A stretch of 64,000 nucleotides of DNA from contig NC_052172.1 in assembly GCF_902713615.1 (NCBI RefSeq), positions 12,504,185 to 12,568,184 on the forward strand, in the 5' to 3' direction. The translations under genes were made by a program, and so were the position numbers. Below the pieces are notes generated by a model that worked only from the letters and a program-made list of their open reading frames with translations, was not told the origin of the DNA and did no database searches. Every line of letters begins with the position of its first letter. The stretch's first letter is position 1. Shown here piece after piece: positions 4,682-59,300 of this stretch. The DNA comes from Scyliorhinus canicula. Taxonomy: Eukaryota.

Positions 4682-4852
4682 GGGCGGGATTCTCCGCAGG
4701 CAGGATGCTCCATTTTGCCGGCACCCCAGGGGTTTCCCGGCGGTGTGGGGCTGCCCCACAATGGCAAACCCCATTGGCCGGCCGGCGTAATGGAGCAGCC
4801 CACCGGAGGGGTGAAGCAGAAATGTGGTGCGGCGGGGCGGAGAATCCAGCCC
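4682..4852. mobile_element. MITE (non-autonomous DNA transposon, PIF/Harbinger-like)
   Basis: TIR GGGCGGGATTCTCCG / CGGAGAATCCAGCCC; 3-bp TSD CAG (4679-4681, 4853-4855). Confidence 0.7.
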
Positions 4853-10735: not shown

Positions 10736-11449
10736 GTAGCCTTACCTGACTATATAAGCAAAGCAGCAAATCCCTTTCGAGGGGAATGCCAACTTGGTGA
10801 GGAAGGTGCCTCGGAGAGTGAAGAGGTCGCTGTGTGTAGACCTTGTGTTTGTGGCTGACCCCGATTTGGATTGAACTTTGGCCTGTATGGCAACCCGCTC
10901 TAGTAATCTGACCTTCTTCGTCCGTGTTTTGACCTTGCTGCCTTGCCCTCCTGAAGTCGCTGTTACATACAATGTTAAAACTTCCCTGGGAAACGGGTTA
11001 ACCATCCAGGTTTAAATAGGGATACCTGGTGAGTAAAGTTGGGCTCAAAGAGCGAGTATTTATTTGCTTTCTCTTCTGTTCTGCTGAGAGCCTGTAGGCC
11101 TTTGAATAAATGTTCCTTTTTGTTTGCTGGACAACTCTGTGAGCTATTCAACTGAGTGAAGTCCGCCCCACCCATCACAATCCCCTGCCCCTTGTGACCT
11201 CGCACAGGATTCGGGCTTCTCGTAAAGATTTTTTAAACTGATTTCTCGCCTAAGAATAAACTACAACGCGAAATGTACCCAGTGGGGAAAGCGAATCGCC
11301 AGTACATGGCTACTCTACAAATCACCAGGAGTAAGAACCAACGTCACATCCCACTCTGGGAAGGTACGCAGAAGATTACAAAGCATCGTTGCAGCCTGTC
11401 GAAATATCCATTATAAACAGTCCTGGTAGCTTAGGAAGTCAGTACTTCA

Positions 11450-12640: not shown

Positions 12641-12829
12641 AACAGCCCTGGCAGCAGACACTGAGCTGGAATCTGTGTGGAATAGAAATGGCATGGAATA
12701 GGAACTCAGGTAAAAGGATCACTTGGTGTGTAATCTGAGGTGACGGAAGCTTTGGGAAGGCATAAGGACAAAATATAGAGCAAGTGCAGAGCGCAGCGGA
12801 GCACCCGGTCAACATCCATCAACTGTAAT

Positions 12830-13482
12830 GAAGTCAAGATCAAGGAGAAATGGGAAGCGGAGTTGGGAGGGGAGATCAACTGGGGAGTATGGAGTGAGGC
12901 ACTGCGAAGGGTAAACGGGACCTCCTCTTGTGCAAGGATGTGCCTGATACAGTTTAAGGTGATGCAAAAGGTGCTTATGACTTGGGCGAGAATGAGTGGG
13001 TTCTTTCAGGAGGTAGCAGGCGAGTGCGAGATGTGTGGGCGGGGGCCAGCAAATCACGTGCACGTGTTGGGGTTGCAAACAAATTGGGAAGATTCTGGGC
13101 AGGGGTGTTCGCGGTAATAGCCAGGATAGTGGAGGAGGGGGTGGACCTGGACCCTTTGGTGGTAGGGTTTCAGAGAAGCCGGAGCTCATGGAGAGGAGGA
13201 AGTCCGATGTTGTGGCCGTCGCCTCTCTGATTGTACGGCGGCGAATTTTGCGGGAGTGGCGGTCGGCATCGTCACCAGGGTTGGCAGCTTGTTGGGGTGA
13301 CCTGTACGACTTCCGGAGGTTAAAGAAGATAAAGTGAGTGAATGGAGCTCTTCGGGGGGGGGGGGGGGTTTGAGGAAACTGGGATCTTTGTGAAAAGAAA
13401 ATTGTAGAAAGTATGTTTCCCGGGGTGTTTATGTGTTGTAACCTGTTTTGATACATGTTGGTAATAAAATACATTTTTTTTA
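12830..13482 (+). mobile_element. 5'-truncated L1-like LINE inserted just downstream of the B9D2 stop codon
   Basis: ORF2 C-terminal similarity (WSEALRRVN…SSCAR…QFKV; CEMCGRGPANHVH); 9-bp TSD AACTGTAAT at 12821-12829 and 13483-13491. Confidence 0.85.
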
Positions 13483-13512
13483 AACTGTAATAAAGCCCCC
13501 CCCTCCCCTCGA

Positions 13513-13826
13513 TCAATATTCTACCCCATACTGGTCAAAGTTGCGGAGAATGATGCTGAGCTGCAGGTGCACTTTGCCCATGGCCACAGTTTGCAGACGA
13601 TAACGGTCAGCTCCGGTGTAAATGAGGTCACTGTGTTTCAGCTGAGGCCCGCCACCCACAAACATCTGGGAGAGCTGCTCCTGCCAAGTACCCAGGGGCC
13701 GCCAGGTGACGCACTGAATCTCGTGGGTCCCCGGGCTGCTGGGGATGTGGCAGAAACCGTAGCCGTACAGATCGTTCCTGCCGAAGGAGTCCTGGTGCCA
13801 GACCTGTACGTAGAGCTTGGGCCAGC
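13513..13826 (-). CDS. B9D2: B9 domain-containing protein 2, last coding exon (314 nt incl. TGA)
   Basis: [17 protein letters not shown]…[11 protein letters not shown] matches the vertebrate B9D2 C-terminus; AG acceptor at 13828-13827, phase 1. Confidence 0.97.
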
Positions 13827-14029
13827 CTGCAGCGGGAAGACATGGACAGAATGAGTTATGTTTGTGCTCAGGCAAGGCGAGAATTCGGATTGATGTTGTC
13901 GCATGACTCCCCTTACCTGCAAACCCGCCCCCCACACACAGCGTATGATGATACAATTTCACAGGCATCAGTTAGCTACTCAACCAAGGTAGCGAGAATC
14001 ATGCGCTCGTGTCCTCACCTTACACCCCC

Positions 14030-14555
14030 ACATGTAAGAAATAGGAGCAGGAGTAGGCCATCTGGCCCCTCGAGCCTGCTCCACCATTCAATGAGATCAT
14101 GGCTGATCTTTTGTGGACTCAGCTCACTTTCCGGCCCGAACACCATAACCCTTAATCCCTTTATTCTTCAAAAAACTATCTATCTCTGTCTTAAATACAT
14201 TTAATGAAGGAGCCTCAACTGTTTCACTAGGCAAGGAATTCGATAGATTCACAACCCTTTGGGTGAAGAAGTTCCTCCTAAACTCAGTCCTAAATCTACT
14301 TCCCTTTATTTTGAGGCTATGCTCCCTAGTTCTGCTTTCACCCGCCAGTGGAAACAACCTGCCCGCATCTATCCTATCTATTCCCTTCATAATTTTATAT
14401 GGTTCTATAAGATCCGCCCAAATCCTTCTAAATTCCAAAGAGTACAGTCCCAGTCTACTCAACCTCTCCTCGTAATCCAACCCCTTCAGCTCTGGGATTA
14501 ACCTAGTGAATCTCCTCTGCACACCCTCCAGCGCCAGTACGTCCTTTCTCAGGTA
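14030..14555 (-). mobile_element. CR1 (HER1-like) LINE 3' end
   Basis: LEGVQRRFTRLIP…YEERLSRLGLYSLEFRR…RNFFTQRVVN typical of the CR1 ORF2 C-terminus. Confidence 0.9.
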
Positions 14556-15264
14556 AAAATTTGGCCCTTTTGAGCCTGCACTACCATTCAATAAGATCAT
14601 GGTTGGTCTGATTGTGGCCCAACTCCACTTTCCTGTGGGCAGCATGTGGTGCAGTGGTTAGCACTGAGACTGCGGTGCTGAGGTTCGAATCCCGGCCCTG
14701 GGTCACTGTCCGTGTGGAGTTTGCACGCTCTCCCTGTGTCTGAGTGGGTTTCACCCCACAACCCAAAGATGTGCAGGGTATGTGGATTGGCCACACTAAA
14801 TTGCCCCTTCATTGGGAAAAAAAGATTGGGTACTTTAAGTTTTTTTTTTAAACTCCACTTTCCTGCCTGTCCTCGACTCCCTTGCCAATCAAAAAAAAAT
14901 CGGTTCAGCTCCCCCTTGAATTGATTGAATGATCCTGCCTCCACTCTTCGAGGGAAGAGAATTCCAAACACTACTGGCTGTCAAGCACAAAAATTATAGA
15001 TGTTTCAATGCGATCATCTCTCATTCTTCTAAACTCCAGAGAACATAGCCTCTGCTCAAACGCGGAGTTGAATGAGCCTATGTCAGGCGGAGGGATCAGG
15101 AACAGAGCTAGTTTCCCTAACTAGGGAACGTGGGTCAATTGCAGCAGGCCCCAATCAACAGAACCTCAGAGATAGGGAGGGAATCTTCTCAGCCCCCGTG
15201 GCTCACACATAACCCCACACGGCTACGATCAGAGCCAGATCCTTGGAACTAAATGGGCAAGAGA

Positions 15265-25589: not shown

Positions 25590-26600
25590 GCTCCTCCCCC
25601 GCCCCCTGCCCCACACCTTCCCTCCCCGAAACCCCGCCCCCTGCCCCACCCCCCACCCTAAACTCTGCCCCTCCCCAAACCCCGCCTCTTGCCCCACCCA
25701 AAACCCCACCCCCTTCCCATCCCAAACTGCGCCCCCTGCCCCTCCGCCACCCCAAACCACTCCCCCTCTCCAAAACACCCCCTTGCCCCTCCCCCACACC
25801 AAACCCTGCCCCTCCCCCACCCCCACACCAAACACCGTCCCTCCCTGGAACCCTGTTCATTGACCCCACCCCCAAGCCCCGCCTCCTGCCCCATCCCCTC
25901 CCCAAACCCCACCCTAAACCCCGCCTCTCCCCAAACCCCACCCCTTCCCAAACCCTGCCTCTTGCCCCACCCACTTCCCATCTCAAACCCCACCCCTGCC
26001 CCTCCCCCACTCCAAACCACTCCCCCTCCCCTCTCCAAAACACCCACTTGCCCCTCCCCCACACCAGACCCTGCCCCTCCCCCACACCAAACCCCATCCC
26101 TCCCAGGAACCCTGTTCGCTGACCCCAATCCCCGCCTCCTGCCCCACCCCTCCCCAAACCCCACCCCCCTCCCCCACCTTAAACTCCGCCCCTCCCCAAA
26201 CCCACCCCCTTCTCGACCCCATCCCCAGACCAACCCCCACCCCTCCCCCTCCCCACCACATACCCAACCCCCTCCCCACACTATACCTCACCCTCATCCC
26301 GTTGCCCCATCCCCACCATTCCACCACCCCATTACCTCTTCGCCCATCTGCATTCCTCCCACCCTTTCCCTCCCTCCTCTCTCCCCCAGCCCTTTCCCGC
26401 CTCTCCCCCACCCCATCCCACCTCTCCCCAACCTCTTCCATCCCTCTCCCCAGCTCCAGTCCTTCCACTCCCTCCCACCCCTTACCTGCTTCCCTCTCCC
26501 ACCCATCTTCTGACTCCCACTTCACCCGACCCATAATCTTCCATTACTGCAGCCCTCTCTCCCCCCACTCCATCAACCATTTTCCGAGCTTCCACCATTC
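25590..26600. repeat. C-rich low-complexity / degenerate tandem repeat
   Basis: Repeated CCTGCCCCTCCCCCACACCAAACC motifs with extreme strand skew. Confidence 0.85.
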
Positions 26601-37009: not shown

Positions 37010-38034
37010 CAGTGTTAATGTGACACTAATAAAAATAATTATGAAATAATTTTCGACTTCGAGATACCTGAGGACACATGATCTAAAGCTTAGTCAAGTA
37101 AGGTATTAAGGAGTATCTTGAAGGAGGAAAGTGAGGTGGAGAGGGAATTTCAAAGCTCATTGCAGCTGAGGGCATGACCACCAATAGTGGAGCGATTAAA
37201 ATCGTAGATGTTCAATAAGATTGGTGGAATTAGAGAATTGGAAGCAGGTATCAGCATTCTGGGTGATACTGTACAATATGCATGGGCAGCACGGTACCAT
37301 AGTGGTTAGCACTGTGGCTTCACAGCGCCAGGGTCCCAGCTTCGATTCCCTGCCTAGTTACTGTCTGTGCATAGTCTGCACGTTCTCCTCGTGCCTGCGT
37401 GGGTTTCCTCCGGGTGCTCCAGTTTCCTCCCACAGTCCAAAGACGTGCAGGTTAAGTGGATTGGCCGTGCTAAATTGCCCTTAGTGTCCAAAAAAAAAGG
37501 TTCGGAGGAGTTAGTGGGTTGGGGGGATAGGATGGGAGGGCTTAAGTGGGTCGGTGCAGACTCGATGGGCCGAACGGCCTCCTTCTGCACTGAATGTTCT
37601 CTGTCTATGTGTAATAGTGTGCGTGACCACTACACATCTTTATACACGTGGCAATCAACTGGAATGAGGTTGTTTTGTGCTTTCAGCAAGGGATAGTTTA
37701 GTCAATCCATGCATAAAAGGCACCCATCCAATGAATTATTGATGAGAGAGCAAGGACTCTTTGGGTCTGTTTAGTGGCTGATCTGCAGGCAGAGGAAGCA
37801 AACAGCTACATCTTAGGTGGCACATTTTCCCTGGAGATTTCATTAAAGGAGCAGATCTCAAGTTTCAAGATGTGGATACTGAGGTCACTCAATGGCCATC
37901 TGCAGAGTTCCAACCTGAAGAACTAGCTTGTGATCTGAGTGATCTTTTCTTTTCTCGTCCCACTCTCCCAGGAGAGCACATCTCCCATCTACTCAGACAC
38001 ACTTCCTGGCTGACGGCCAACAGAGCCAAACCCC

Positions 38035-38986
38035 TGTTGCACGTTTTACTATGGGCGTAAAACGCGTTTATTGGAGTGTATTAACACGCCTCCGAGTTCG
38101 ACGTGTGCTTAACACTGCTAGGCTCTGTTCTATGTAATTATTTAAGCTCTGGAGTCGCCAGCTGCCGTATAGGCAACGTCACAAGTATTCCAAGGTCAAA
38201 TTCAAAGTAATAAAGACGATACACCGATTAGTCAAGTTCAAACGATCAATATTTATTATACAGTTAATAATAAATACTCATGCACACACACTAGGAGACT
38301 AAGCTACAACTAAACATAAGCAAACAGAATACTTATCTAACAGGAACAGGCAAGGTCAGAGAACGAGGCCTTCGTCCTGGTTTTGTCTGCAGCCTTCAGC
38401 AAGCGTTCTGGCACTTGGGAGTCTAGCGGGCTTGGATCGCGTAGCGAGCGTTGAACTTACGGTTTCGGCGGCTGGTGCTCAACGGCTGGAGTCAGGATAC
38501 CAGGTGTCAGTCGGGGCCGGAGCACAGGTTTAACAGACCGGACAACACGAGGTCCCTATCTTTTATAGGGGTTCCGTTGTCCTTCCCTCTTCTCGGGCGG
38601 GCTCTACCTATTGGATCAATTTCTTATCGATACTGGATTAATTCCCCAATGCGAGGGGGTCTCCGTGATGGAGGGGGCGTTTCTTATGTCCTTTTGTTTG
38701 GAGGTTTCTGGTGCCTCGATGTCTGGGTCTTGATTGGAATGTGTCCATTCAGAACCAAATGTATCTATTGTGTGGGTGTTCAAGTCTGATGGCCTCATTA
38801 GCATGCAAAGCGTTTTGCCATTTGCACCTAGCTAAGGTCTCTTCACCTGAGCCCAAACTGGTTTCTGCTGCTGCAGAATGCAAACTGCTCTGTGCAGACT
38901 GCTGTTCTGGCTGAACTGTCTGTTTCTCAGCAGCCTTCCATTTTAGTTTGGCTCAGTGTCCATTTTGCGTGGCCAGCATGGCTACA
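38035..38986 (-). repeat. 3' LTR
   Basis: Direct repeat of 46934-47885 (offset 8899); no difference found by eye, and ORF-track translations within both copies are identical. Confidence 0.97.
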
Positions 38987-38996
38987 TTCCCTCCTT
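38987..38996 (-). promoter_or_regulatory. Polypurine tract
   Basis: AAGGAGGGAA immediately 5' of the 3' LTR on the minus strand. Confidence 0.8.
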
Positions 38997-39314
38997 GTGA
39001 TCCTCACAATCATACTATTGTGAAGGATCACCTATGTACTTTGCCTCCTTGTGTTCTGACCTCTTGCCAGTTCCTGTTCTACTCTGTTCTAAACTATGGG
39101 AAGAAGAGAAAAAAATTTTAACTAACATTTCTACTTGGCCCTATGTCAAAGGGACATGCATTACTACAATTGGGAACCTCTACCTATCACTATTAACCTT
39201 AACCTTAACTTAAACATTTAATCACTCTAAACCTTAACCATTCACACCACAACATCACACTTCCCAACTCGGCAGTCGAGTATGGAACAATATAATACAT
39301 GGCTGAATTTTTAT

Positions 39315-39668
39315 TTACAGAGTGTTGTAATCAGTGAGGGGTTGAGGGGTTTGGTGGAATCCGAAGATGGGGGATTGCACTCTATAGATGGGTGAGGTGC
39401 TGGAACGAGAGGCTCTCCTCTTCCATTTCCTCAACCTGAGGGTCTGCACTAGGATGGTGAGGATCGCGATCACCAACAGTGATTCGATTATGTAGGACAT
39501 GGAGTACCACGTCATGAATTTAGTACACCAGGTCTGAACCTCGCTGATCAGAGCTGAGCACTGGGGGTTTGCTGTACTAACATTTACGGTGGGGGTTGTG
39601 GGGGAAACGTGTCTTGTTTCCACACATATACATATGACATTAAATAGTAATAAGTGGGCTTCCATCAT
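39315..39668 (-). CDS. Small accessory type I membrane protein (~117 aa) in env position
   Basis: First ATGs after a strong acceptor (39772-39771). Hydrophobic N-terminus, NVS sequon, Cys pair, TM helix, RLRKWKRR, Tyr-containing tail. Confidence 0.7.
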   Translation of the reverse strand: MMEAHLLLFNVICICVETRHVSPTTPTVNVSTANPQCSALISEVQTWCTKFMTWYSMSYIIESLLVIAILTILVQTLRLRKWKRRASRSSTSPIYRVQSPIFGFHQTPQPLTDYNTL

Positions 39669-40640
39669 TTTGCTGTTCTTCCTCTTTCTCTTCCTTCTTC
39701 CTCCGGTATTGACAATCCTGGCTTCGACCTCTGTCTCGTCCTTTGAAACCTTTGGGATCAAGCACAGTATCTGTCAATACACAGTTTAAGACCTTTACTT
39801 GTTAGTGCATCTGTCTTTCAAAACCCAATTGACCCTTTAAAATGACTGGCTAAGTCACACCCTGTGACTCCCCTCATTTTTTTTCAAAAAGCGAATTTAA
39901 AGACCAGCATACACCTAACAATCCTTCCTTCTGCGAGCCGTCTCGCAGGCTTTGCTGATTTACCATCCGAATGTTCCCGGATGTAAATAGCATGTGGGAT
40001 GGTGGCCGAAGGGCTACCTAACGTAAAATGAAAACAAAATGTGGAAAGAAACGTCCGAATGAGTTGCGTATGGGCCGCTACGGGTGCGAGTTGGATGGGA
40101 TCCCCGGGTAGGGCGTGCTGTGCCATACCCGAGCTTGGCTGACCAAGGGTTGGTTCTCAGACAGGGCGGGTCCTCAGTGCCGTTTGTCCACTGCCTGAGT
40201 AACCTGGAAAAACGGGTACGAATGTGTTGACCATGACTTGCAGCCTCTATTTCGCCGAATAGAGGGGCACCTAAAAACAATGGAGCCAAGATGCTCCGTT
40301 CTGAAAACAGGGAACAAGTCGTGAACCGTGTCGGTTCACCAGAGGATACAACTGAAGTTCTCAGAAATATCTGCGGACAAGCTATTTGGCGTGTGGCCTT
40401 ACAACTTTGGAAAAGATCTCCAATCAAACCGAAGTTCTCAGAAGTATCTGCGGACAAACTAACGTGTATGTGAGGTGGTCACAATCTTTTCAGCTGAAAA
40501 GAAGATGTCCATCCTCCAGCTGAAACATTTACATTCCTGAAAACAAACAAACATAAAACGAAGACAAACATACGTGCAGGTTCCATCAGAAAGGACATCG
40601 TTTCCCTCAAACGATTCCTATCTTACATCATCTGGACACC

Positions 40641-41678
40641 TCACTTTGATTCTGCCTCTGTGAACAGGGTCACAAAGGGGTTGCCGTGTCGGGAGTCAGA
40701 CACCGTGTCGTCCTGCTCTCCCGGATCCCACACCCTTGTGTGGATCAGGCATGCTATTTTGGAGTTGTGTGACCGGGGGTCACTTTCATCATTGCGGACA
40801 AGTCTGTAGGAATTGTCCCTGTGCCATTGGGTAGCGTCGAGTGTGTTGTCGGGGTAGTCGGGGTCGGGTGGTGGTTCGGGGTTTTTGAGGTAAGTGACTT
40901 CCATGGGGTCACTGGAGTCGGGGTCGTAGGTGGTGCAGTGTGGGCTGTATGGCTGTGTGGTGTCGCTGTCTTCAGAGTCAGTGTCTGTCCTACTGTCTCT
41001 GCTGTGGCAGCTTGTGGGCGTGTCGGGGCGTGGTCTGTAGTGGTCTGTGGGCGGAGTCGTGGGCGAGTCCGTTGATGAACTGGTCTGTGAGGGGGATGGT
41101 GGAAAAGTGTCTCTGGTGGGCGGGGTGAAGTGTTCTGCTGCATCCAGCAGGACATGGTGAGCATGGTTGGCCTGTGTTCCATAAGCCTTTAACTGGTTTA
41201 TATGGAACCACGCGGTCTTCCCATTAGGATACTTTATCCTGTAAACGGAGGGGCTAATTTTGTCCGAAATTGAGTAGGGACCGGAATATTTTGGAGCCAA
41301 AACACTGCTGGGGTTATAAACAGATAACATTACCTGTTGCCCAACCTGGAATTCTGTGGTGTGTACGGTCTTATTGAAACAGGCAGTCCGTTGCTGTCGG
41401 CGTTTCCCTAGCTGGACTGCGGCTGCGAGCTGTGCAGACCTCACAGTCTCAACTAGTTCTTTAACTGCCTTTTCATGTGTGAGGGCCGTCACTTCGGGGC
41501 TTGTCATGTCCAGTCCTGAAAGGAATTCTGTACCTTTCATAGGGCGTCCGGTCATGAGTGTGTGTGGGGTGTATCCTGTCGATGTGGAGACAGTGTTCCT
41601 TATGAACATAAGTGCAAAGGGGAGCACTGAATCCCATGTGGAATTGTTCTCTTGAACCATTTTCCTAAGGGTAGTTTT
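40641..41678 (-). CDS. pol: Pol C-terminal part after frameshift: integrase C-terminus with GPY/F motif and Pro/Thr/Asp-rich extension
   Basis: TTLRKMV…WDSVLPFALMFIRNT…TGYTP…KYSGPY…WFHINQLK continues the integrase core in another frame. Confidence 0.85.
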   Translation of the reverse strand, partial: KTTLRKMVQENNSTWDSVLPFALMFIRNTVSTSTGYTPHTLMTGRPMKGTEFLSGLDMTSPEVTALTHEKAVKELVETVRSAQLAAAVQLGKRRQQRTACFNKTVHTTEFQVGQQVMLSVYNPSSVLAPKYSGPYSISDKISPSVYRIKYPNGKTAWFHINQLKAYGTQANHAHHVLLDAAEHFTPPTRDTFPPSPSQTSSSTDSPTTPPTDHYRPRPDTPTSCHSRDSRTDTDSEDSDTTQPYSPHCTTYDPDSSDPMEVTYLKNPEPPPDPDYPDNTLDATQWHRDNSYRLVRNDESDPRSHNSKIACLIHTRVWDPGEQDDTVSDSRHGNPFVTLFTEAESK

Positions 41679-44600
41679 AGGGTCCGATTCATGCGCTCCA
41701 CAATCCCGCTGGACTGTGGATGATACGCAATGTGGAAGTTCTGTTTGATTCCGAATATTGTCAGGACGTTCCTCATGACCCGTCCTGTAAAGTGAGATCC
41801 CTGGTCCGAATCGATACTTCGGGGTAAACCCCATCTCGTGAAGATGTGGTGGGTCAGGATCTTTGCAGCTGTCTTTGCTGTATTTGTTCGTGAGGGAAAT
41901 GCCTCTACCCACTTGGTAAAGGTATCTATCACCACCAGAACGTATTTATAGCCATTCCGACAAGGGGGCAATGGACCTATAAAATTGATCTGGAGGTTTG
42001 TCCAAGGGCCGTTAACTGGGCGAGTATGCCGAAGTTGTGCCTTCTTAGAATACCTCTCCGGGTTATTCTGAGCACAAATCAGGCAATTCTCAATGTAGTG
42101 CGTTACCTCATTCCTGAGATCAGGCCACCAACAGAGTTGCCTGAGGTGCCTCGTTGTTGCATCAATTCCCTGATGCCCGTGTCCGTCATGGAACAAGGCA
42201 ATTATCTGATTCCTGTCCTGCTGTGGGACCACATAAAGTCGGTCCTTAATGATCACACCCTCATGTGTGGTCAGTGCGTGTTTAAAGTGCTCGTAAGCAG
42301 GCACAAAGTTTCCCTTGAAAACCTCCCTGAGGTCTCCGTCCTGTTTTTGTGCTGCCACGAGATCTTTAATATCAGTCTGTGAGACTTGGACTGCGCTCAC
42401 AGGGGCGCTAGCTGGTGCGCTAGCTGGGGGGGTCCATAAGTGTCCTCTCCTGGAACCTGCCTTAGCCAACGCGTCGGCTTTTACATTCCCAGGGGGTGAT
42501 GACCTATGGTGACTTCTTACTTTTATTATGCCGAAGGTCCTGTCCTTCGCTTTCGCTAAAATATGCTGGAGTAGAGGGGCTGATGGAAGGGGTTTCCCGT
42601 CTGCGGAGACAAAACCTCGTGTCCTCCACAGGGGCAGAAAATCGGTTAAACTGTTACAGACATATAAGCTGTCCGAATATATGTCTGCTGGGCTGGGGAA
42701 AGAATCGGGGTGGTCCACTATGTACGCTATGGCTGCTAGCTCTGCTGCCTGCGCGCCTAAGTGACCTGGTAACTTAAGAGCTATCTCTTCGAGAGCGCGC
42801 CCCTGCGCGTCCTCTACATAGATGCCGCATCCTGTGATACGCTCACCATTTAAAACTGTGGAGGAACCGTCTACATAAATCCTCAAGGGTCCACACGTGT
42901 CTGTGGGCTGGGGGCTTTGTTTCGGGTTCCCTATCTTCCTGGGGGGTGTTTTCGCTAAAAAGGGTCCTGTGTTATGCAGGGGAGCTACAATTTCACAGTC
43001 ATGGGGCTGTCCGGGGTATTGGAGGTTGTCTGCTAAGTATGTGTGGGTGCGTGTCCGTTTTACTGTAATGTCCCGTCCTTGTAAAAGTAGGGTCCACCTA
43101 GCTGCCCTAATCTGGCTAACTGAACCGTCCTTCAGTCGACCGTCTAGTAGTAGCTGTGTGGGTGTGTGTTCGGTCAGAATAGTAATGGGGTTGAGTCCGG
43201 TGATGTATGAGAAATACTGCACTGCCCAGAAGACAGCAAGGAGGTGCCTCTCACAGGCCGAAAATCCTTGTTCTACTGGGTCTAACAGTCGGGAGGCATA
43301 AGCCACTGGTCTTAGCTGCTCGTGCCGTTCCTGAAGCAACACGGCCGAGAGGGTCAGATCGGTGCTCGCTACCTCTATTGCGTACGGTGAAAGTTGGTCG
43401 GGGACTAGCAGCGCGGGTGCTGCACTAAGGGCTCGTTTCAACTCTTCCACAGCGCCTGTATGCTGCGGAAGCCATTCCCAGGGGGCTCCTTTCTTAAGGA
43501 GGTCTGAAAGTGGGGCGGCTTTTGTCGCGAATCCGTCGATGTGGTTCCGACAATAGCCAACCAGTCCTAAAAACGACCGGAGGGCTGATACATTCTGGGG
43601 AAGGGGCAATTTGACGATCGAATCAATTCTTTTGAATTCGATCTCGCGTTTGCCGTGCGTGATGACTGATCCCAAATACATCACTTTACTTTCCAATATT
43701 TGGGCCTTTTTCGGGTTAACTTTACAGCCAATTTCAGTTAAGAGTTCTAGGAGTTCGGCCAGAAGCGAAATGTGCTCTGCCTTTGTGTCTGTCTGCAGTA
43801 GTAGGTCGTCTACATACTGTACCAGACATTCGGGTCGGGAAAATTTTTCTAATCCACTTGCCAGCTGTCGGTGGAAAATGGAGGGTGAATTGTGGAATCC
43901 CTGTGGGAGGCATGTCCACGTGTACTGCTGCGTTTTAAAAGTGAATGCGAATTTGTATTGGCACGCTTTTGCCAATGGTATTGACCAGAATCCATTACTG
44001 ATGTCCAATACCGTGAAGTACTTGGCGTTGAGACCCTGCTTGAGCATGGTCTCGGGACTAGTAGCTACCGTTGGGGCTACTGCGGGGGTTACTTTGTTGA
44101 GTTCCCGATAATCGATGGTCAGACGCCATGATCCATCGGGCTTCCTCACTGGCCAAATAGGGGCATTGTTGGTGGAGGCTACCGTTCTCAGTACACCTTG
44201 GTCCAACAAGCTGCCTATAACTTTTTCTATTTCCACCTCTGCCTCGAGGGGAAATCTATACTGCTTTTGCGGTCGGGGGTCCTGTCCGGTAACATGAACT
44301 TGTCCAGTCATTCTACCACAGTCATGACGGTGACTTGCAAATGCTGTCCTGTGTTTGTTTAGTAGGGCCTTAATTTGTCGGTCGTTGTGGAGTGTAGTCA
44401 GGTCGAATGAGTACTCTCCCACTGCGCTAATCCGATTAGCGTAGTCTCCTACTGTGAGGGTGGCTGGGGCTCTGTCCGATCTCGCCATTCGCCAGACACA
44501 CTGGTTCACTGGGTCGAACGACAAGCTATGAGCGTTCATGAAATCTATCCCCAGGATGTGCTCTGCTGTCCGGGGAAGATTTACTAGAACTACGGGGTGT

Positions 44601-44866
44601 CTTGTGCTAATGTTCCCTAGCTGGATCGCTACGGGTGCTGTGATATGTCCCTGCTGCGAGTGTCCGGTGAACCCGCTAAGTGTGATGGTGGAGGTGGTCG
44701 GCCACGTGTCTGCGTGTGCCGTGGTTGTGGAGTTAATGGTGGTGCGGGATCCTCCTGTGTCCCACAATAACTCTATGGGCTTCCCTTTGACTTTTGCCGT
44801 GACTACGGGCCTCCCTGATGAGTCCCATAGTGTGTCACAGACCCAAGTGGGGGAGCCCGAACACCG
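41675..44866 (-). CDS. pol: Pol: protease, RT, degenerate RNase H (tether), RNase H, integrase
   Basis: LLWDTGGS; LDISNGFW, LPQGFHNSP, YVDD (43805-43816); RPVAYASR; YVDGS…AELAA…YSDS…GNVKAD; HHCC zinc finger; SDQG…E. In frame with gag after a single TGA. Confidence 0.95.
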
Positions 44867-46615
44867 TCAGTTCGTCTCGTCCACATTGGTGGGTCCTGAC
44901 TGTACTGCTACATTGTGGATGGGTTTTGCCTTGTTGCGGTTCAGAGTGCCTGTCTGTTGGCCTCTCTGAGATCGCTGGGGTGCATTACACTCTTTTGCCC
45001 AATGCCCTAACTGTCCACAGTTATAGCATTCCTGTCCTTTCTGTTGTGGGCTGCTCTTGCCTTCATTTACCCATGCGGGCTTCTGGTGCTCTCTGACTGC
45101 TTGGATATCTGCAGCAGCCTGAGCCTCTTCTGGGGATCTAACCTTTGCTTTTGCCTGAAGCGATTGCTCCCAAGCGCGGGACAATCTTTTGAGGACCCAT
45201 TTTTCGTTATGGGCCTCTTCTGAGGGGTCGTAATTATTGCAAGCGCTCTGTCCTGCGTCTGTTGCGTGTGAGATAATTGTGCGCGTCCACTTAACCATGT
45301 TTTCGCGGGTTAAATGCGCTCTATCTAGCTGTCCGAAAACTGCGCTGAAGTGAATCCACAGCCTTCCGGCGAATGCTGTGGGGTGTTCAGATCTCTTCTG
45401 CCTGCACTTATTCAAGCCTTCTACGGGGTCACCTCTATTGTACCCGATGGCATCTAAAATGGCAGTGTGCATCTCCTCTAGGCTGCCTCCTGCCACGTTT
45501 TGTGGGTCGGGGAGGGCTGCCACTACACTCTGGTCTAAGCTCAACACGGTGAGCTTAACCTGCTCTCTCTCATCCAGGCCGTACATGGTAGCCTGCTGTT
45601 TTACTTTCGCGAAGAACTGGTGGGGGTCTGCGGTGGGGAGGAACGGAGTGATCTTTTCACAAGCGTCCCTTAGCTGGGTTACTGTTAACGGGGTGGTGTA
45701 AGTTATGTCTGGGGCGCCTTCGGATTCGGCTTTCCTCTGTGTGGTTACGGGATTCATGGGTGCGGTTATGATCTGAGCTGTGGGGGGTTGGGGTGCCTGT
45801 CGTTTCTGCTGAGCTGCGGGCGCACATGTTCCCTGAACATAACGCTGCGCTGTCTCGCTTAATTCCTGCCAATCTGGGGCGTTTTCCCCATCTAACTGAG
45901 CTCCAAAGGTGCTTTGGAAGCCATTCTGCACCGAAAGCAGAGATTGCAGTTCCGCAATCTGTTTTCTGCATTTCGCGTGGTCAACTGTGCTTTGTCTTTG
46001 TTCGGTCGTTGCAGCGTGGAGTGCTCTCAAAGCTGCTTTGAGATCCGAACATTGCCTCTGCAATGCCTCCACCTGCTTTTCCGATTCCTGTCTTATCAGA
46101 ACGGCACGTTGCACGTCCTGATAGGCTTTCTCATACTGGGTCTGGGAACTGTTCAGATGAGCTAGACAAGACTGGTGAGCCCTCTTGGCATCATCCACCT
46201 CTCTACCCTTCTCTGCCAACTTCCCTTTAAGATCCAGGTTTTCTTTCTCGATGTCCCTGACATCGACCTTACTCATTCGGTTCCTTTCCTCTAAATCTGC
46301 CCGGAGCGTCCTGATGACCTCCTCTGCGCCTCGCAACTGTGCCAAGCAGGACACAATCGCCATCGGCTTGCGTGCTTTACTTAAACTCTTTTTGTGTATC
46401 TGAGAGAGGTTCTCCCACCAAGTATGACCTATACTTCCGGGACCTGTCTCCTCATTTGCACAAAACTCTTTCCAAAGGGGCCATCCCTTTCCCTGCAGAT
46501 ATTTGCGGAGTTCCAGCTCCCACGTGGGACACTGGCCTACTCTGCTACTGCTGCTGGTCGCTGCGACCACAAACCTTTCTGGGTCCATCAGACGTTCCAT
46601 TGCCTGCATGGCCAT
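44867..46615 (-). CDS. gag: Gag (582 aa) with long coiled coil and one CCHC zinc knuckle
   Basis: Intact ORF after the PBS; CYNCGQLGHWAKEC near the C-terminus. Confidence 0.92.
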   Translation of the reverse strand: MAMQAMERLMDPERFVVAATSSSSRVGQCPTWELELRKYLQGKGWPLWKEFCANEETGPGSIGHTWWENLSQIHKKSLSKARKPMAIVSCLAQLRGAEEVIRTLRADLEERNRMSKVDVRDIEKENLDLKGKLAEKGREVDDAKRAHQSCLAHLNSSQTQYEKAYQDVQRAVLIRQESEKQVEALQRQCSDLKAALRALHAATTEQRQSTVDHAKCRKQIAELQSLLSVQNGFQSTFGAQLDGENAPDWQELSETAQRYVQGTCAPAAQQKRQAPQPPTAQIITAPMNPVTTQRKAESEGAPDITYTTPLTVTQLRDACEKITPFLPTADPHQFFAKVKQQATMYGLDEREQVKLTVLSLDQSVVAALPDPQNVAGGSLEEMHTAILDAIGYNRGDPVEGLNKCRQKRSEHPTAFAGRLWIHFSAVFGQLDRAHLTRENMVKWTRTIISHATDAGQSACNNYDPSEEAHNEKWVLKRLSRAWEQSLQAKAKVRSPEEAQAAADIQAVREHQKPAWVNEGKSSPQQKGQECYNCGQLGHWAKECNAPQRSQRGQQTGTLNRNKAKPIHNVAVQSGPTNVDETN

Positions 46616-46910
46616 TTCCTCTGACTCTCTTTTTATAATTTGGAACAGGGGGTTGCTGGGGTGGTGTTTCGTAAAAAGGGTACGGCTTACGCTATTTTCC
46701 GATCACAAAACTACCGAAAGTTTGTCGCAACAAAAAGCTTTCAGTTTTACCTTACAGCCCTGTTAGTACGCATGCACTAAACACACTTCCGAATTTCGCT
46801 TATTATTTTGAACACCTTGAATACTTGTGATCTCTTTCTTTCTCTGCAATTTGGAGTTCTAGTTCAAATTTCAGGGTCCTGGACACTGTGGTGTTTCCAC
46901 TTACAACAGG

Positions 46911-46928
46911 GTCCCGGCGGAGTCGCCA
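46911..46928 (-). promoter_or_regulatory. Primer-binding site, tRNA-Arg(UCU)
   Basis: TGGCGACTCCGCCGGGAC, complementary to …GUCCCGGCGGAGUCG-CCA, which from recall is the 3' end of a vertebrate tRNA-Arg-TCT; 5 nt from the LTR end. Confidence 0.85.
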
Positions 46929-46933
46929 CTAAA

Positions 46934-47885
46934 TGTTGCACGTTTTACTATGGGCGTAAAACGCGTTTATTGGAGTGTATTAACACGCCTCCGAGTTCGA
47001 CGTGTGCTTAACACTGCTAGGCTCTGTTCTATGTAATTATTTAAGCTCTGGAGTCGCCAGCTGCCGTATAGGCAACGTCACAAGTATTCCAAGGTCAAAT
47101 TCAAAGTAATAAAGACGATACACCGATTAGTCAAGTTCAAACGATCAATATTTATTATACAGTTAATAATAAATACTCATGCACACACACTAGGAGACTA
47201 AGCTACAACTAAACATAAGCAAACAGAATACTTATCTAACAGGAACAGGCAAGGTCAGAGAACGAGGCCTTCGTCCTGGTTTTGTCTGCAGCCTTCAGCA
47301 AGCGTTCTGGCACTTGGGAGTCTAGCGGGCTTGGATCGCGTAGCGAGCGTTGAACTTACGGTTTCGGCGGCTGGTGCTCAACGGCTGGAGTCAGGATACC
47401 AGGTGTCAGTCGGGGCCGGAGCACAGGTTTAACAGACCGGACAACACGAGGTCCCTATCTTTTATAGGGGTTCCGTTGTCCTTCCCTCTTCTCGGGCGGG
47501 CTCTACCTATTGGATCAATTTCTTATCGATACTGGATTAATTCCCCAATGCGAGGGGGTCTCCGTGATGGAGGGGGCGTTTCTTATGTCCTTTTGTTTGG
47601 AGGTTTCTGGTGCCTCGATGTCTGGGTCTTGATTGGAATGTGTCCATTCAGAACCAAATGTATCTATTGTGTGGGTGTTCAAGTCTGATGGCCTCATTAG
47701 CATGCAAAGCGTTTTGCCATTTGCACCTAGCTAAGGTCTCTTCACCTGAGCCCAAACTGGTTTCTGCTGCTGCAGAATGCAAACTGCTCTGTGCAGACTG
47801 CTGTTCTGGCTGAACTGTCTGTTTCTCAGCAGCCTTCCATTTTAGTTTGGCTCAGTGTCCATTTTGCGTGGCCAGCATGGCTACA
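46934..47885 (-). repeat. 5' LTR with promoter, splice donor and poly(A) signal
   Basis: Minus strand order: CCAAT (47513-47509), GC box (47494-47500), TATAAAA (47466-47460), donor ACC|GTAAGT (GT at 47359-47358), AATAAA (47156-47151). Confidence 0.95.
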
Positions 47886-47988
47886 CCCCTCACCAGCCAC
47901 AAACTCTTCACGGCTTTTTGCTCGCTGCATCAACGTGGGAGCAGCACCAACCTGGACAGTAGTTCAAAACATTAAGGAGTCTTACAAC

Positions 47989-49599: not shown

Positions 49600-52270
49600 A
49601 GGCTGCTTTTTAAAATTGAGCATGATTCTGTTCAGCACTTGTTAATGCTCTCAAAGGAAAAGCTCTTTCATCGCCATGTGCCATTGTATAAAAGGCAACT
49701 GCACCTACCCCATAGGGTGGTAGGTCACATGTGAGTGGTATTTTCAACATACGGTCGAAATGAACAAAGATTCTGATTTCTTTAGCACATTTTTGACTTT
49801 TGTATGTGCCTCTTGACAGCCTTTTGTCCAATTCATTGTTGAATCGTATGTAAGAATATATGGAGTCCTCTTTTTAAAATAAATTTAGAGTATCCAATTT
49901 TCTTTTTCCCCAATTAAGGGCCAATTTAGCATGACCAATCCACCTACCCTGCACATCTTTTGGGTTGTGGGGGGTGATACCCACGCACACACGGGGAGAA
50001 TGTGCAAACCTATGCAAACTCCTCACGGACAGAGGCCCAGGGCCAGGAGTGCTTTTTTAAATAATAATCTTTATTGTAGGCTTATATTAACACTGCAATG
50101 AAGTTACTGTGAAAATCCCCTCGTCGCCACATTCCGGCGCCTGTTTGGGTACACTAAGGGAAAATTCAGAGTGTGCAATTCACCTAACAAGCAGATCTTT
50201 CGGGACCTGTGGGAGGAAACCAGTGCGCGTGGAGGAAACCCACGCAGACACGGGGAGAACGTGCAGACTCTGCACAGACAGTCACCCAAGCAGGAATCGA
50301 ACCTGGGACCTTGGAGCTGTGAAGCAACAGTGCTAACCACTGTGCCGCCCATAAGGTGACGAGATTTGGAATGAATTTTCCATAGTAATTGGTGAGTCCT
50401 AAAAGAGATCTCAGTGGTGATGTATTCTGCGATCTTGCAGCATCTAAAATCATTGTCATTTTCTTAGGTTCCTTGCGGAACCTGTCCTTATCAATTACAT
50501 GGACAAGATAGCTTATTGATGATTAGAAAAATTTGCATTTCACTCTTGACATGAAGATTGTGTCATTCGAGACACTCCATTGTGTCTTCTAAATTCATGA
50601 GGTTCTCCTGTTCAGTCCTGCCGGTAATGTCACCCAAATAACAATGAACACCGTTGAGGCCACTAAGGATTTGGTCCATGATCTTACTGTGTGGTTTAGT
50701 CCACCCGGAAATCCAGTAAATAGGTCCTTTATTAGGAATACTGGTCAGCACACAACACTGTGTTTATCGTCATTTTAAAGTTACCACGGATTCTTACTGA
50801 GCCATCTGGTTTGATAACTGGGACAGTTGTGGTCACCCAATTGCTCGATGTAACATTCTCCATCACGCCGTCTCTGATCAATTTGCCAAGTTCCACTTCA
50901 ACGTTTGGTTTGATAGCATATGGCAGTTCTTGCCGTTGAGAGTGCTATCTTGAGCCACCCCTCGACTCCAGTCATTTCCCCTAAAGTGTTTACAAATATT
51001 TTCTTGTACTTTTCTAAGAGTTTCTGTAATGTGTTCTTTCCATTAACCAATTGGGTCACAGCTTACCAAATATTTTGATCTTGTTCAACTGCAAAAAGTG
51101 CAGGAAAATTGCCTTTTACCACATGTAGTGACAATTTTTCAGATCGACCTTTCACTTCAACTTGCACCAAGATATAACCCTTCACTGGAACCACCTCTTC
51201 CGTGTAATTTTTCAAGATTATATCAGATGGCTTTAATAGTACATTCTTGATATAATTTTTTAGAGATAAGAGATTCAACAGCTCCCGTACCTACTTCCAA
51301 TTTAATTTTGTTTCCATTCAATTTTGGATAGATCCAAAATCTCTCTGCATTGCCTTGCATCGATAATTAGATTACCCAATTATTTTTTCCAATCAAGGGG
51401 CAATTTAGCATGGCCAATCCACCTACTCTGCACATTTTTTGGGTTGTGGGGGCGAAACCCACGCAGACACTTGCATCGATAATACACAAACTTTTAGTTC
51501 TTTGATCTCCGTGGACATTGTGTCTTCCTGGGAATTCTCATAATTGTCTTTGGACATTCAATGGACTCTTTTTGTGGTTTTGGGTGCGTTCTTCCGTTTA
51601 CCCATTTTCGAGGTTTGAGGATTGAGTCTGGCCCAGCACCCCTTTATTATGTGACCTTTCTTGTCACAAATACGACATTTATGTTCTCGACACCCCCTGG
51701 GCACACCTGTGGCATGCTTGCATGTTGAGTGATCTTCTTTTCATCAGTATGCACTGTGCTTATTTTGGTGGCAGCTCCAATTTGGGAAACTTCTTTTGCC
51801 GGTAATTCCATAGTCACGGCTATTTCAAACGTGTGAGTGTTAGAGAGCTTTCTGTTAGCAATCGTCTCTGCATTGTCTCAATTCTCAATCCGCATGCGAG
51901 TCTGTCTCACAGCGTGTCTTCAAGGGTCGATCCAAACTCACAATTCTTTGCCAGTTTCCAGAGTACTGCTACAAATTGTAGAATATTTTCACCCTCTTCT
52001 TGACTACACCAATGAAATCTGAATCTCTCTGCTGTAATTAATGGTTTGGGATATTCAAGGACATTCGTTAATTCCCTGTACATTATTATACCAGGAAGTA
52101 CAAAACTTTGTAAAAGGGTGAAGGTTTTCTACTACACTCAAGAAAGTTGATACCTTAATTTGATCCGGTATCCTGATCACAGCAAGGTATTATTGGAATC
52201 TCCCTTCATAGGAACTCAATTCTCATTCTCATCGAACGGTCCACAGCGTCACCTTTTCCCAGCCAATTAC
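49600..52270 (-). pseudogene. Decayed Ty3/Gypsy (Mag/K02A2.6-like) gag-pol remnant interrupted by SINEs
   Basis: CRICDKKGH knuckle, YTEEVVPVKG, IMDQILSGLNGVHCYLGDI, LRSLLGLTNYYGKFIPNL, LTCD..PYGVGAV; many stops and frameshifts. Confidence 0.8.
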
Positions 52271-56378: not shown

Positions 56379-59300
56379 CCCTGCCAGCGATGCACACATC
56401 TGATAAATGAATTTTTTAAAAATGTTGAATCGTACTTGAAGCATGCATGTTGTATTTTCATTTTGTTAGATGTTGGCATCAGCCCAGGCCCCACTCGACA
56501 GGAGAACGAAAGGCGACAGCTCACTCTACCACAGACAGGAGGACATTATTTATGACACAAAGCACAGTGGCTGCATGGAAAGTCTAAATATCTCCTTCAG
56601 GGGGAAATTGAAGTTCCTGGCAGAGGTCCCATTCTTTCGAATGCAGCGATGAGTGTGTGAGAGAGACACTGATTGTCTCCAATTGGGGTTACTTTACAGC
56701 GGTTGCCTCTCAAGTGCCAGTGAATCAAGCTGGAGCCCCATGGACTCTGAAGAACCGTGCTTTACAGAAAATTACGAACCGCAGTGGAACTCAAATTATC
56801 CCTGTGGGTGGGAGTGAAAAACATTTTGGATAATGGGCTCAGTAATTTAGCGGCCAGGGCGACATCAGAATCAAAATGCAGGCCGATTCAATCGGGAGAG
56901 TTAAGGCTATACAGGGATGTGCTTGGACCAGAACATGGTGACAGAAGGAGGCCATTCAGCCCCCTCAAGCCAGGTCTGCCATTCAACAAGATCATGGTTG
57001 TTTTGTACCTTAACTCCATCGAACCACCTTGGTTCAGTAACCCTTAAAACCCCAGTCTTTCAAAAAAAATTAATCAATCTCACTTTTGCCACTTCCGGCC
57101 TCCACAGATTTTTTGGTTTCCGTTACCCTTTGACTGAAGGGTAAGGGTGACACGGTGGCACAGTGGTTAGCACTGCTGCCTCACAGCGCCAGGGATCCAG
57201 GTTCAATTCCGGCCTCAGGTGACTGTCTGCGTGGAGTTTGCACATTCTCCCCGTGTCTGCGTGGGTTTCCTCCGGGTGCTCCGGTTTCCTCCCACAAGTC
57301 CAAAGATGTGCAGGTTAGGTGGAATAGTCATGCTAAATTGCCCCACGGTGTCCAAGGATGTGCAGGTTAGGTGGGGTTACGGGGAAATGGGAACCTGAGG
57401 AAATGGGTTCTCTTTACCTCCCTTACCTTTAATCACCTAAAACGCCCCAATTTGGTCTTTAATTTTCGATATTCAAGGAAAACGTGGCTGATCCGTGCAA
57501 CGGAAGCCTCGGGTCCTTTAGAGGCACTTTATAAATTCAAGTTGTTGTTGACGAGGTCAATTGTAAACAGCCGCTCTCTGGAGAGCCGTGACTGAAGCAT
57601 GTCACCAGAGAGTTAGAAGCCATGAAGGTTTTGTGTTAAACTGACATTGTGAAGCGAGTGTTCAGCTCTTTAGATTATAGGGAGGCTTGGCTGCGATTTG
57701 GGAATGACAGACAGGTTAATGTTCACGTATGAAAACAAACTACACTAATTACGGAGAGACCACTGTTGAGATTTAGTAATCATAAACTGAGGGAATGATC
57801 CTCAACCTGGGCTTTGTGCCACTTATCTCATTATAATGCAGTTCAGTGCTGTTAATTGCTCCCATTCTGATTCACACACATTATACCCTGCAGAACGCAG
57901 CTCGCACCACAACACATGTATGACTATAGGCAGATGCAGTGCAAACAGGGGTTCAGCAAAAAGGGAGGAACAGCAGAGGGGGAAAAGGAAATGGGAAGAA
58001 AAGGGAAGAGGAGAGGAATGAAGGATGGAGGGAGGGAGAAATAGAAATAAAAAATTGCTTCTTGTCACGAATAGGCTTCAAATTAAGTTACTGTGAAAAG
58101 CCCCTAGTTGTCACATTCCGGCGCCTGTCCGGGGAGGCTGGTACGGGAATCGAACCGTGCTGCTGGCCTGCTTGGTCTGTTTTAAACGCCAGCGATTTAG
58201 CCCAGTGAGCTAAACCAGCCCCTAGCTAAACCAGCCCCTGGTTGGAGTGAGGTGTGCACGCAGTCAGAGGCAGGACGGAGGGCAGGGATGGTGAGAGAAG
58301 GAAAATGAAGGGGTAAGGTAGAATAAAAAGAAGGCAGCAGGAAGTGACAGGGAGATAGAGAGAGGAAGGGAGACGAGAGGAATGGAAAGGGAAAGGAGGG
58401 AGGTGAGGAGCCAAGGGGAAGGAGGCAGGGAGAGTGAGAGAAGGATGGCATAAAAAATTCCCTCTCAGAGATAGCATCCCTGGAATTTGGATGGCCCCCC
58501 ATATCCAGAGGCAGGCGAAGCACATGTTTGTTTTCTGTAGCCTGTTTCCCCTGAAACAGGTCTTAAAGCAACTGCTTGAGGACAGCATTTAACACCAGGT
58601 GTTGATGACCAGATGTCTCACCTGATCTTGCCACCCAGTTGACCTGTTTGGCTGCATTATGGATGCACTTTCCTTGGCCATCAAGTGCTGGAGCGGGACT
58701 CTAACCCGGAGCTCTGAGCGCAGAAGCAGGGCCGAGTGGCCATCATGCCACAAGACCTTCCTTCGTCCTCGGAACTGCACCACCCCCTCCCCACACAGAC
58801 AGCCCCCCCCCCCCCCCCTCCCCACACAGACAGGCAGCACCTTCCAGGGTTGGGGGAAGGCAATTAAGCTCTGGTCCAATTGCAGATACGGTAGCACAGT
58901 GGTTAGCACTGTTGCTTCACAGCAAAAGGTCCCGGGTTCGATCTCCACTTGGGTCACTGTCTGTGCGGAGATCTCCCCGTGTCTGCGTGGGTTTCCTCCG
59001 GGTGCTCCGGCTTCCTCTCACAAGACCCGAAAGACGTGCTGTCAGCTGAATTGCACATTCTGAATTCTCCCTCTGTGTACCCGAACAGCGCTGGAATGTG
59101 GCGACGAGGAGATTTTCACAGTGACTTCATTGCAGTGTTGATGTCAGCCTACTTGTGACACTAATAAAGATTATTATTAGGTTAACCTACGGTTCGCCTC
59201 TGGATCGTCCTCAGGGGCAGGAAGCGAAGATGTCCAAGGACCATGTTCCAGCTTTTAACTACACCTAGCGCCCGCCCTGCGTTGAGCTGCTTGCTCAGCA

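Follow-up and report, generated by a model that had tools for sequence, protein, structure and literature searches.

The window, as we call the whole stretch of 64,000 nucleotides analysed here (Scyliorhinus canicula, contig NC_052172.1, positions 12,504,185 to 12,568,184), contains a long terminal repeat (LTR) element of 9,851 bp at positions 38035-47885. The element and all of its parts described below lie on the minus strand, and positions are those of the window. Its layout is LTR, primer-binding site (PBS), gag, UGA, pro-pol, a small open reading frame (ORF) for a membrane protein, polypurine tract (PPT) and LTR. We consider it likely that the element is a provirus of an endogenous retrovirus (ERV) family that resides in sharks and belongs to a deep, unclassified retroviral clade otherwise found in frogs, the coelacanth and a turtle.

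The two LTRs are each 952 bp long, show no mismatch over their 952 positions, and form the sole direct repeat pair in the window. Because all long ORFs run on the minus strand, the copy at 46934-47885 is the 5′ LTR and the copy at 38035-38986 is, in the sense of the element, the 3′ LTR. The LTRs have TG..CA ends and contain one TATA-like and two AATAAA-like motifs. The same four bases, CCCC, flank the two outer LTR ends (38031-38034 and 47886-47889) and represent a target site duplication (TSD). This sequence is of low complexity, but a full-length relative in the turtle Emydura macquarii (L003, positions 4180-14974) likewise has a 4-bp TSD. An 18-nt PBS that begins with TGG lies 5 nt past the 5′ LTR, at 46911-46928, and its first 7 bases are matched by the PBS of the turtle element. 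It was not matched to a tRNA, the only ARAGORN call in the window being an odd tRNA-Phe(aaa). The PPT, AAGGAGGGAA, abuts the 3′ LTR at 38987-38996, and the turtle element carries AAGGAGGGGAA at the corresponding place. LTRs ending in TG..CA, with a PBS behind the 5′ one and a PPT ahead of the 3′ one, are all features of the retroviral type. An initial annotation, made from the letters alone, had described identical 952-bp LTRs and a 4-bp TSD; the TSD was found on both sides, and an alignment of the LTRs bore out their identity.

The insertion appears to be recent. With no differences over 952 positions, the upper bound (95%) on its age is about 0.7, 1.6 or 7 million years (My) if substitutions accrue at 2.2e-9, 1e-9 or 2.2e-10 per site and year, respectively, the last of these being the rate assumed for a chimaera (PMC4422223). 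Since the bound depends in this way on the rate, to call the insertion very young is a relative statement. Shark substitution rates are low, and at the chimaera rate the identity of the LTRs would allow an insertion as old as about 7 My; it could also be imagined that the identity is an artefact of assembly or gene conversion and that the insertion is old. We regard this as very improbable, because Gag is fully open, the reverse transcriptase (RT) and RNase H domains retain every conserved column, the TSD is intact, and the CpG observed/expected ratio of the element (0.67) exceeds that of its flanks (0.49-0.50).

Gag, Pol and the junction between them

The gag gene, at 44870-46615, is intact and comprises 582 open codons. 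An AlphaFold2 model of Gag, built on 19 relatives and with a predicted local distance difference test score (pLDDT) of 72, begins with a long helix at residues 82-209, which gives way to a beta-hairpin and a pair of helical lobes (residues ~290-510) and then to a zinc knuckle. On the window, the N-terminal long helix or coiled coil (residues 82-237) corresponds to 45905-46372 and the capsid-like region (residues 288-510) to 45086-45754, and the knuckle, of the CCHC type, lies at 44987-45031 (Pfam zf-CCHC, 1e-07). When the model was compared with the PDB using Foldseek, 50 of the top 50 matches were retroviral, Arc or PNMA capsids, led by those of human T-lymphotropic virus 1 (HTLV-1), murine leukemia virus (MLV) and bovine leukemia virus (BLV), with probabilities of 0.96-0.99 at E-values of only ~8e-3.

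The gag frame ends in UGA (44867-44869), with CGG as the next codon, and pol lies in frame with it. This arrangement suggests that Gag-Pro-Pol is produced by readthrough of the stop codon, for which UGA-CGG is a candidate site. Both UGA-CGG and UGA-CUA belong to the type II leaky contexts tabulated in PMC13517186, where UGA gag-pol junctions are also recorded for SSSV (the swim bladder sarcoma virus of salmon), zebrafish ERV (ZFERV) and a toad ERV. In-frame UGA junctions likewise occur in relatives of the element, as UGA-CUA in a frog element (L001) and as UGA-UGG in the turtle element. A search for an RNA stem-loop downstream of the Gag UGA gave a nonsignificant result (z -1.8). Between the PBS and the start codon of gag, the leader contains at ~46744-46751 the sequence AAG/GTAAAA, which resembles a 5′ splice donor, with the slash at the presumptive splice point, and could serve a subgenomic mRNA for the small ORF discussed below. 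The intact gag, the CCHC knuckle in its product and the in-frame position of pol had all been proposed in the initial annotation, and each of these proposals was upheld.

Pro-pol (40644-44866) is one broken gene, with a single frame change in its integrase (IN) part and no internal stops. It encodes a protease with the motif DTG (44531-44815; Pfam RVP, gag-asp_proteas), an RT with the motif YVDD (43667-44278; RVT_1, 5.6e-34), a tether or connection domain that represents a degenerate Ty3-type RNase H (43079-43474, residues 465-596; RT_RNaseH_2, RT_RNaseH), and a second, acquired RNase H (42452-42883, residues 662-805; PF00075, 7e-16). The IN comprises an HHCC zinc-binding domain and catalytic core (41717-42229; Integrase_H2C2, rve) and an SH3-like C-terminal domain of the GPY/F type (41181-41318; SH3_Tf2-1, Integrase_p58_C), and it belongs to the type that combines an N-terminal extension with a C-terminal domain of SH3 fold. 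Beyond it lies a tail of ~180 residues rich in Ser, Thr, Pro and Asp (40644-41180). The SH3 domain is matched by the same domain in the turtle element and in the nearest relative of the element (L004), and a long low-complexity tail past SH3 is also present in the latter; the turtle Pol stops 13 residues after SH3. The AlphaFold2 model of the upstream pol frame has a pLDDT of 85.

The highly conserved columns of Pol are all kept in RT (27/27), RNase H (11/11) and the N-terminal domain of IN (6/6), and 5 of 6 are kept in the protease. One of the three catalytic acidic positions of IN is not acidic in the window copy, whereas this column is conserved in all 39 other rows of the alignment, and a HMMER alignment to foamy virus IN concurs. 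The stretch of IN that contains the frame change is read in one frame by the frog and turtle relatives, and the nearest relative (L004/L005) has its own frame change elsewhere in the IN part; the break is therefore peculiar to the window copy among these elements. The pol translation contains all five RT strings that the initial annotation quoted, but the description of pol there as near-intact overstates the function of a Pol with a frame change and a nonacidic catalytic position in IN.

The env position and a small membrane-protein ORF

Between pol and the 3′ LTR lie 1.66 kb (the post-pol region, 38997-40643, and the PPT) in which we found no env-sized ORF. Each frame contains 20-33 stops, the longest open stretch in any frame is 154 codons, and no Pfam match was obtained. 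The absence of an env-sized ORF had been noted before, but the position is not empty: a conserved ORF of 117 codons from its first ATG (39318-39668) had been missed. The predicted protein is of a signal/transmembrane type, with a hydrophobic, signal-like N terminus, a single NxS site, a single transmembrane helix and a tail of basic character. Just upstream of its ATG is an unbroken purine run of 29 nt (39676-39704), which could be a second PPT or a splicing or translation signal.

The only database relative of the small-ORF protein is an uncharacterized protein of S. canicula itself (P0238, LOC119963282; E 5e-37). The two are 61% identical over 113 residues, from Met 100 of P0238 to its end, and the identity is concentrated in the C-terminal anchor and tail (55/68 residues, compared with 14/45 in the N-terminal part). 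Residues 1-99 of P0238 have no counterpart in the window element, so the gene model probably fuses unrelated pieces. Since P0238 shares the short form from Met to end, this form predates the window insertion. Conservation at a second catshark locus suggests that the protein is used, and its makeup is consistent with either of two origins, the shrunken remains of an Env (signal, anchor and tail) or an accessory membrane protein.

In the search for env-bearing relatives, env-sized ORFs were found in the turtle and frog elements. The turtle element has LTRs of 927 bp that are 100% identical, and its LTR ends and PPT are much like those of the window element. It carries gag, an in-frame UGA, a pol without breaks and a two-part env-sized ORF, interrupted by one in-frame stop, which encodes an N-terminal signal, a furin-like site and a C-terminal membrane anchor. 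It is likewise very young, in a group whose lokiretroviruses have been described as highly degraded. In the frog element, gag is followed by UGA-CUA, pol and an env-sized ORF that is in two pieces and encodes an anchor at the C terminus. Neither env-sized ORF matched any Pfam family, solved structure or database protein, and they show no likeness to each other. No remnants of such ORFs were detected in the post-pol region of the window element, either by tblastn with the frog and turtle env-sized ORFs (no match) or by Smith-Waterman comparison with shuffled controls (z <=2.1).

These observations bear on whether the family might be an ordinary infectious retrovirus with a full env that the window copy alone has lost by deletion. 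Distant relatives in turtle and frog hold env-sized ORFs, and the small ORF has the parts found at the two ends of an Env: a start resembling a signal, an anchor in the membrane and a tail. A fresh deletion, however, would not leave 1.66 kb full of stops and without similarity to env, and decay in place must have been negligible because the LTRs are identical. Moreover, the relative of the small ORF in S. canicula has the same short form. A deletion confined to the window copy is thus improbable, and the stop-ridden post-pol region, together with the short ORF shared with a second catshark locus, argues that env was lost in the lineage before the window insertion.

Relatives and phylogenetic position

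Among 5.8 billion protein clusters, no protein was more than 47% identical to the window Pol. The best matches (36-47%) belong to the frog genera Pyxicephalus, Rhinophrynus, Aquarana and Xenopus, to Latimeria, to the turtle Emydura and to Logan/ENA contigs; class I ERVs with MLVIN_C come next at 30-34%, ahead of Gypsy elements. The nearest Pol relatives (46-47%) are the Logan contigs L004 and L005 (SRR17051962 and SRR17051963), 4-5 kb in length, which encode a Gag with CCHC and have the IN SH3 domain and long low-complexity tail. Their pol is in the -1 frame relative to gag, rather than in frame with it, and the SH3 domain and tail are in yet another frame. Gag finds its closest matches in sharks, with two proteins of Scyliorhinus torazame (P0121, 76%; P0122, 62%) and one of Heterodontus francisci (P0123, 33%), besides two metagenome fragments (53%). 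The presence of Gag relatives in S. torazame and Heterodontus indicates that the family lives in sharks, as the initial annotation had supposed and as the match of 76% makes plausible; the relative of the small ORF in S. canicula is a further sign of residence in sharks. P0121 is a Gag-only protein annotated as a gene with three protein accessions (XP_072337111-3), and may represent either the expressed gag of an ERV or a co-opted gag.

Neighbour-joining (NJ) trees on p-type distances were calculated for RT, RT plus tether, RNase H, IN and all domains together. The window element pairs with P0001 at 92-99% bootstrap support (61% for IN alone), and the pair falls inside the set of frog and coelacanth elements, with class I ERVs nearby and Gypsy at a clear distance. 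Comparison of the window Pol with solved structures gave 239 bits for foamy virus protease-RT, 236 bits for the RT of MLV or xenotropic MLV-related virus (XMRV) and 222 bits for Ty3. Latimeria P0005 behaved in the same way (233, 231 and 211 bits, respectively), while a class I control (P0022) was clearly gamma-like, with 428 bits for MLV/XMRV RT, 211 for foamy protease-RT and 142 for Ty3. Because the window Pol is about equally far from the foamy, gamma and Ty3 references, we place its clade on a deep, unclassified branch that is neither class I nor close to the foamy viruses. The proposal of a deep lineage thus withstood these comparisons; the accompanying claim that the RT resembles that of foamy viruses more than others did not, as the RT is no closer to foamy viruses than to MLV or Ty3.

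An ordinary Ty3/Gypsy retrotransposon might also lack env, encode a CCHC Gag and carry an IN with an SH3_Tf2-1 domain, and the Ty3 RT score of 222 bits is not far below the others. Nevertheless, Ty3/Gypsy elements have one RNase H immediately behind RT, and the tether followed by a second RNase H (PF00075) was not seen in the Gypsy matches of our search, the element clusters with dual-RNase-H elements and away from the Gypsy outgroup in every tree, and the capsid matches are retroviral. The chance that it is an ordinary Gypsy element is therefore negligible, in keeping with the earlier view that it is retrovirus-like. A short Gypsy-type pol fragment does occur elsewhere in the window, at 50352-50685, with 30-40% identity to P0034; it is unrelated to the element.

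The foamy viruses (Spumaretrovirinae) provide the best match to the window element for whole Pol in BFVD, for RNase H and for IN. The best BFVD matches of Pol are equine foamy virus Pro-Pol (24% identity), another entry (28%), walleye dermal sarcoma virus (WDSV; 27%) and a bat gammaretrovirus (28%). Against solved structures, the window RNase H scored 37.8 bits with foamy virus, 31 with cellular RNase H1 and 25-27 with MLV/XMRV, the last compared with 131 bits for the class I control. The window IN scored 114.7 bits with prototype foamy virus (PFV) IN, aligned from residue 12 of the latter, and 91.6 bits with Ty3 IN; the PFV match was rejected as a foamy signal, the class I control scoring 103 on the same chain. 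The Gag N-terminal coiled coil is a further likeness. Foamy viruses also have 4-bp TSDs. Their Gag, however, has no Cys-His box, and their Pol is made from an mRNA of its own instead of as a Gag-Pol fusion. The window element has a Gag with CCHC, a feature also of its relatives, and an orthoretrovirus-like capsid; its pol lies in frame behind gag, and it has neither env nor bel-type genes. The foamy-specific families Gag_spuma, Spuma_A9PTase and Foamy_virus_ENV were not found among the Pfam matches of the window.

With gamma- and epsilonretroviruses and class I ERVs the element shares an in-frame gag-pol stop (UGA in the window, rather than UAG), a 4-bp TSD and an IN with an N-terminal extension. 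It differs from class I ERVs in the absence of Pfam matches to Gag_p30, MLVIN_C and TLV_coat, and in its score with MLV RT (236 versus 428 bits). Membership of ERV4 was considered and rejected: ERV4 makes a TSD of 5 bp and is without either a zinc finger in Gag or a GPY/F module (PMC4299795, Table 1), whereas the window element has a 4-bp TSD, CCHC and SH3_Tf2-1.

Lokiretroviruses and Odin (PMC7947760, PMC9040795) resemble the window element in their dual RNase H, their deep position relative to canonical retroviruses and a foamy-allied RNase H, and Odin, the sister group of the lokis, further lacks env, although it is a cnidarian element and the host here is a vertebrate. That the window element is a shark member of this grade, sister to canonical retroviruses and env-less like Odin, nonetheless strikes us as doubtful. 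Ty3 is as near to its RT as any retrovirus is, which is compatible with such a position but not specific to it; its RNase H is nearest to that of foamy viruses, with which PMC7947760 groups loki RNase H; and the hosts of its relatives (coelacanth, frogs and turtle) overlap the list of loki hosts. The top matches are named "NYNRIN-like" by NCBI, and an alliance of loki IN with CGIN1/NYNRIN has been reported (PMC7947760), but the same name is given to a class I ERV (P0029). The Env of lokiretroviruses is paramyxovirus F-like (PF00523), and neither the window nor the frog and turtle env-sized ORFs gave a match of this kind, even at E up to 1-10. The zebrafish loki Gag is described as having a glycine-rich end and no CCHC (10.1101/2024.03.25.586437), in contrast to the CCHC Gags of the window clade. 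Close relatives of the element include no ray-finned fish, whereas lokis are reported in 120 such species (PMC7947760), and lokis are not reported from cartilaginous fish (PMC7947760, PMC9040795). Finally, in the NJ trees the window clade adjoins class I ERVs and not the basal long branch of P0101.

P0101 (L006, ENA ERZ27246857) is a dual-RNase-H element on that basal long branch; its Gag is without CCHC, its pol is in another frame, and its cluster has 525 member sequences, making it a candidate for a different deep lineage. It was considered as a loki anchor and rejected since the contig ends before any env. A second candidate anchor, Salvelinus P0054, was set aside because it turned out to be a class I element with TLV_coat and MLVIN_C.

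A more serious alternative is that the element belongs to a lineage already named in sharks and frogs, such as the foamy-like ERVs (FLERVs), lineage I related to snakehead retrovirus (SnRV) or ERV-Spuma.0-Sca, and merely adds a well-preserved copy to it; we would put this at only slightly below an even chance. These ERVs occur in the same host groups as the window clade, sharks and frogs, and have a Pol outside the classical genera. A FLERV of Xenopus tropicalis clusters with Callorhinchus FLERVs (PMC5512871), lineage I of the elephant shark ERVs (CmiERV) clusters with SnRV (PMC4422223), and S. canicula has 293 ERV elements, with a family ERV-Spuma.0-Sca (PMC10699275). X. tropicalis has about nine SnRV-like copies, and one without env is reported from the transcriptome of a frog (PMC4131045). 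ERVs related to SnRV and Ovex1 can, like the window element, combine a Gag zinc finger with an IN GPY/F module (PMC4299795). The window clade includes X. tropicalis P0007 and other frog elements, and the best BFVD matches are equine foamy virus Pro-Pol and fish retroviruses. Against this, the window Pol is no closer to foamy virus than to MLV, Gag and the apparent mode of gag-pol expression are unlike those of foamy viruses, and the published elements were compared by host and description rather than by sequence. In the shark and frog FLERVs only pol is detectable (PMC5512871), whereas the window element shows the whole layout, and published shark insertions are dated to 36-75 My, in contrast to the identical LTRs found here.

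Several points weigh against the reading that we consider likely, a shark-resident family in a deep clade shared with frogs, coelacanth and turtle. The deeper NJ nodes are weak (36-62% support), and the trees were made without named reference retroviruses (foamy, loki, SnRV, ERV3/4), so that the clade carries no label. The LTR identity could stem from gene conversion or a slow shark clock, the single frame change in IN could be an assembly error, and the case for readthrough comes from codon context, with nonsignificant RNA structure downstream. A single copy was seen: no solo LTRs or further fragments of the element occur elsewhere in the 64-kb window. Beyond the window, an exact look-up of Gag for other copies found no match, a metagenome scan gave one match at 29% and a viral-contig scan gave none.

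The remainder of the window contains several repeats. A 33-bp satellite at 5734-9416 (~112 copies, 83% match) gives rise, on either strand, to long ORFs that are spurious and show weak Pfam matches (Mucin-like, LRR_5 and pentapeptide). A C-rich repeat at 25609-26212 (and within 24-28 kb), whose CCCCA-type units measure 95 and 265 bp, sits in a stretch of strong negative GC skew. No Rfam family was found in the window, and the 90-nt tRNA-Phe with anticodon AAA called by ARAGORN at 58132-58221 (minus strand), for which no Rfam tRNA reached the gathering score, is probably a pseudogene or a sequence like a short interspersed element (SINE).

Proposed spread without an envelope and its wider meaning

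From established retrovirology and the routes listed in PMC10435555, the following life cycle may be proposed for the family. Transcription of the genomic RNA would start in the 5′ LTR; termination of translation at UGA would give Gag, and a minority of readthrough at UGA-CGG would give Gag-Pro-Pol. Particles would assemble inside the cell, where a tRNA at the PBS would prime reverse transcription, and IN would then insert the DNA copy, giving the 4-bp duplication. Without env, the family would spread in the germ line by intracellular retrotransposition or with proteins from other copies. The description of the element as recently mobile without Env appears apt for the family, but it does not extend to the autonomy of the window copy, whose IN is doubly compromised. 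Since the IN is compromised twice while the LTRs are identical, the simplest reading is that IN was supplied in trans, and the window copy was most likely made in this way; otherwise it would have been damaged soon after insertion, or the frame change would be an assembly error. Env-less ERVs such as ERV-L and those of the intracisternal A-particle (IAP) type (routes in PMC10435555) are alike in having gag-pol without env, young LTRs and defective copies that are probably trans-complemented. They represent another lineage and host, and the window element differs in that it keeps a conserved small ORF for a membrane protein.

The element is not a new kind of element, as foamy-like and SnRV-like ERVs of sharks and frogs, and env-less ERVs, have already been described. 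A further-reading claim, which we advance with considerable reservation and think unlikely to hold in full, is that the frog/coelacanth/turtle/shark clade is a distinct major uncharacterised retroviral lineage, that its shark branch turned into an env-less germ-line retrotransposon that keeps a 117-residue membrane protein under selection, and that the window copy is the first very young retroviral insertion described in cartilaginous fish. If true, such a lineage would join a foamy-like RNase H and IN and a coiled-coil Gag to an orthoretrovirus-like CCHC capsid Gag and UGA readthrough.

Well-preserved proviruses of cartilaginous fish are rare, with published shark insertions dated to tens of My, and a 2023 survey of invading ERVs includes no cartilaginous-fish order among the hosts (PMC10435555). 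In sharks and frogs, only the pol of such a deep branch had been recognised before. Because its full layout is shown, the window copy can serve as a reference when types of Gag, expression of gag-pol and loss of env are compared near the retroviral base, and the conserved ORF for a small membrane protein offers a concrete case for what stays or is gained when the envelope is lost.

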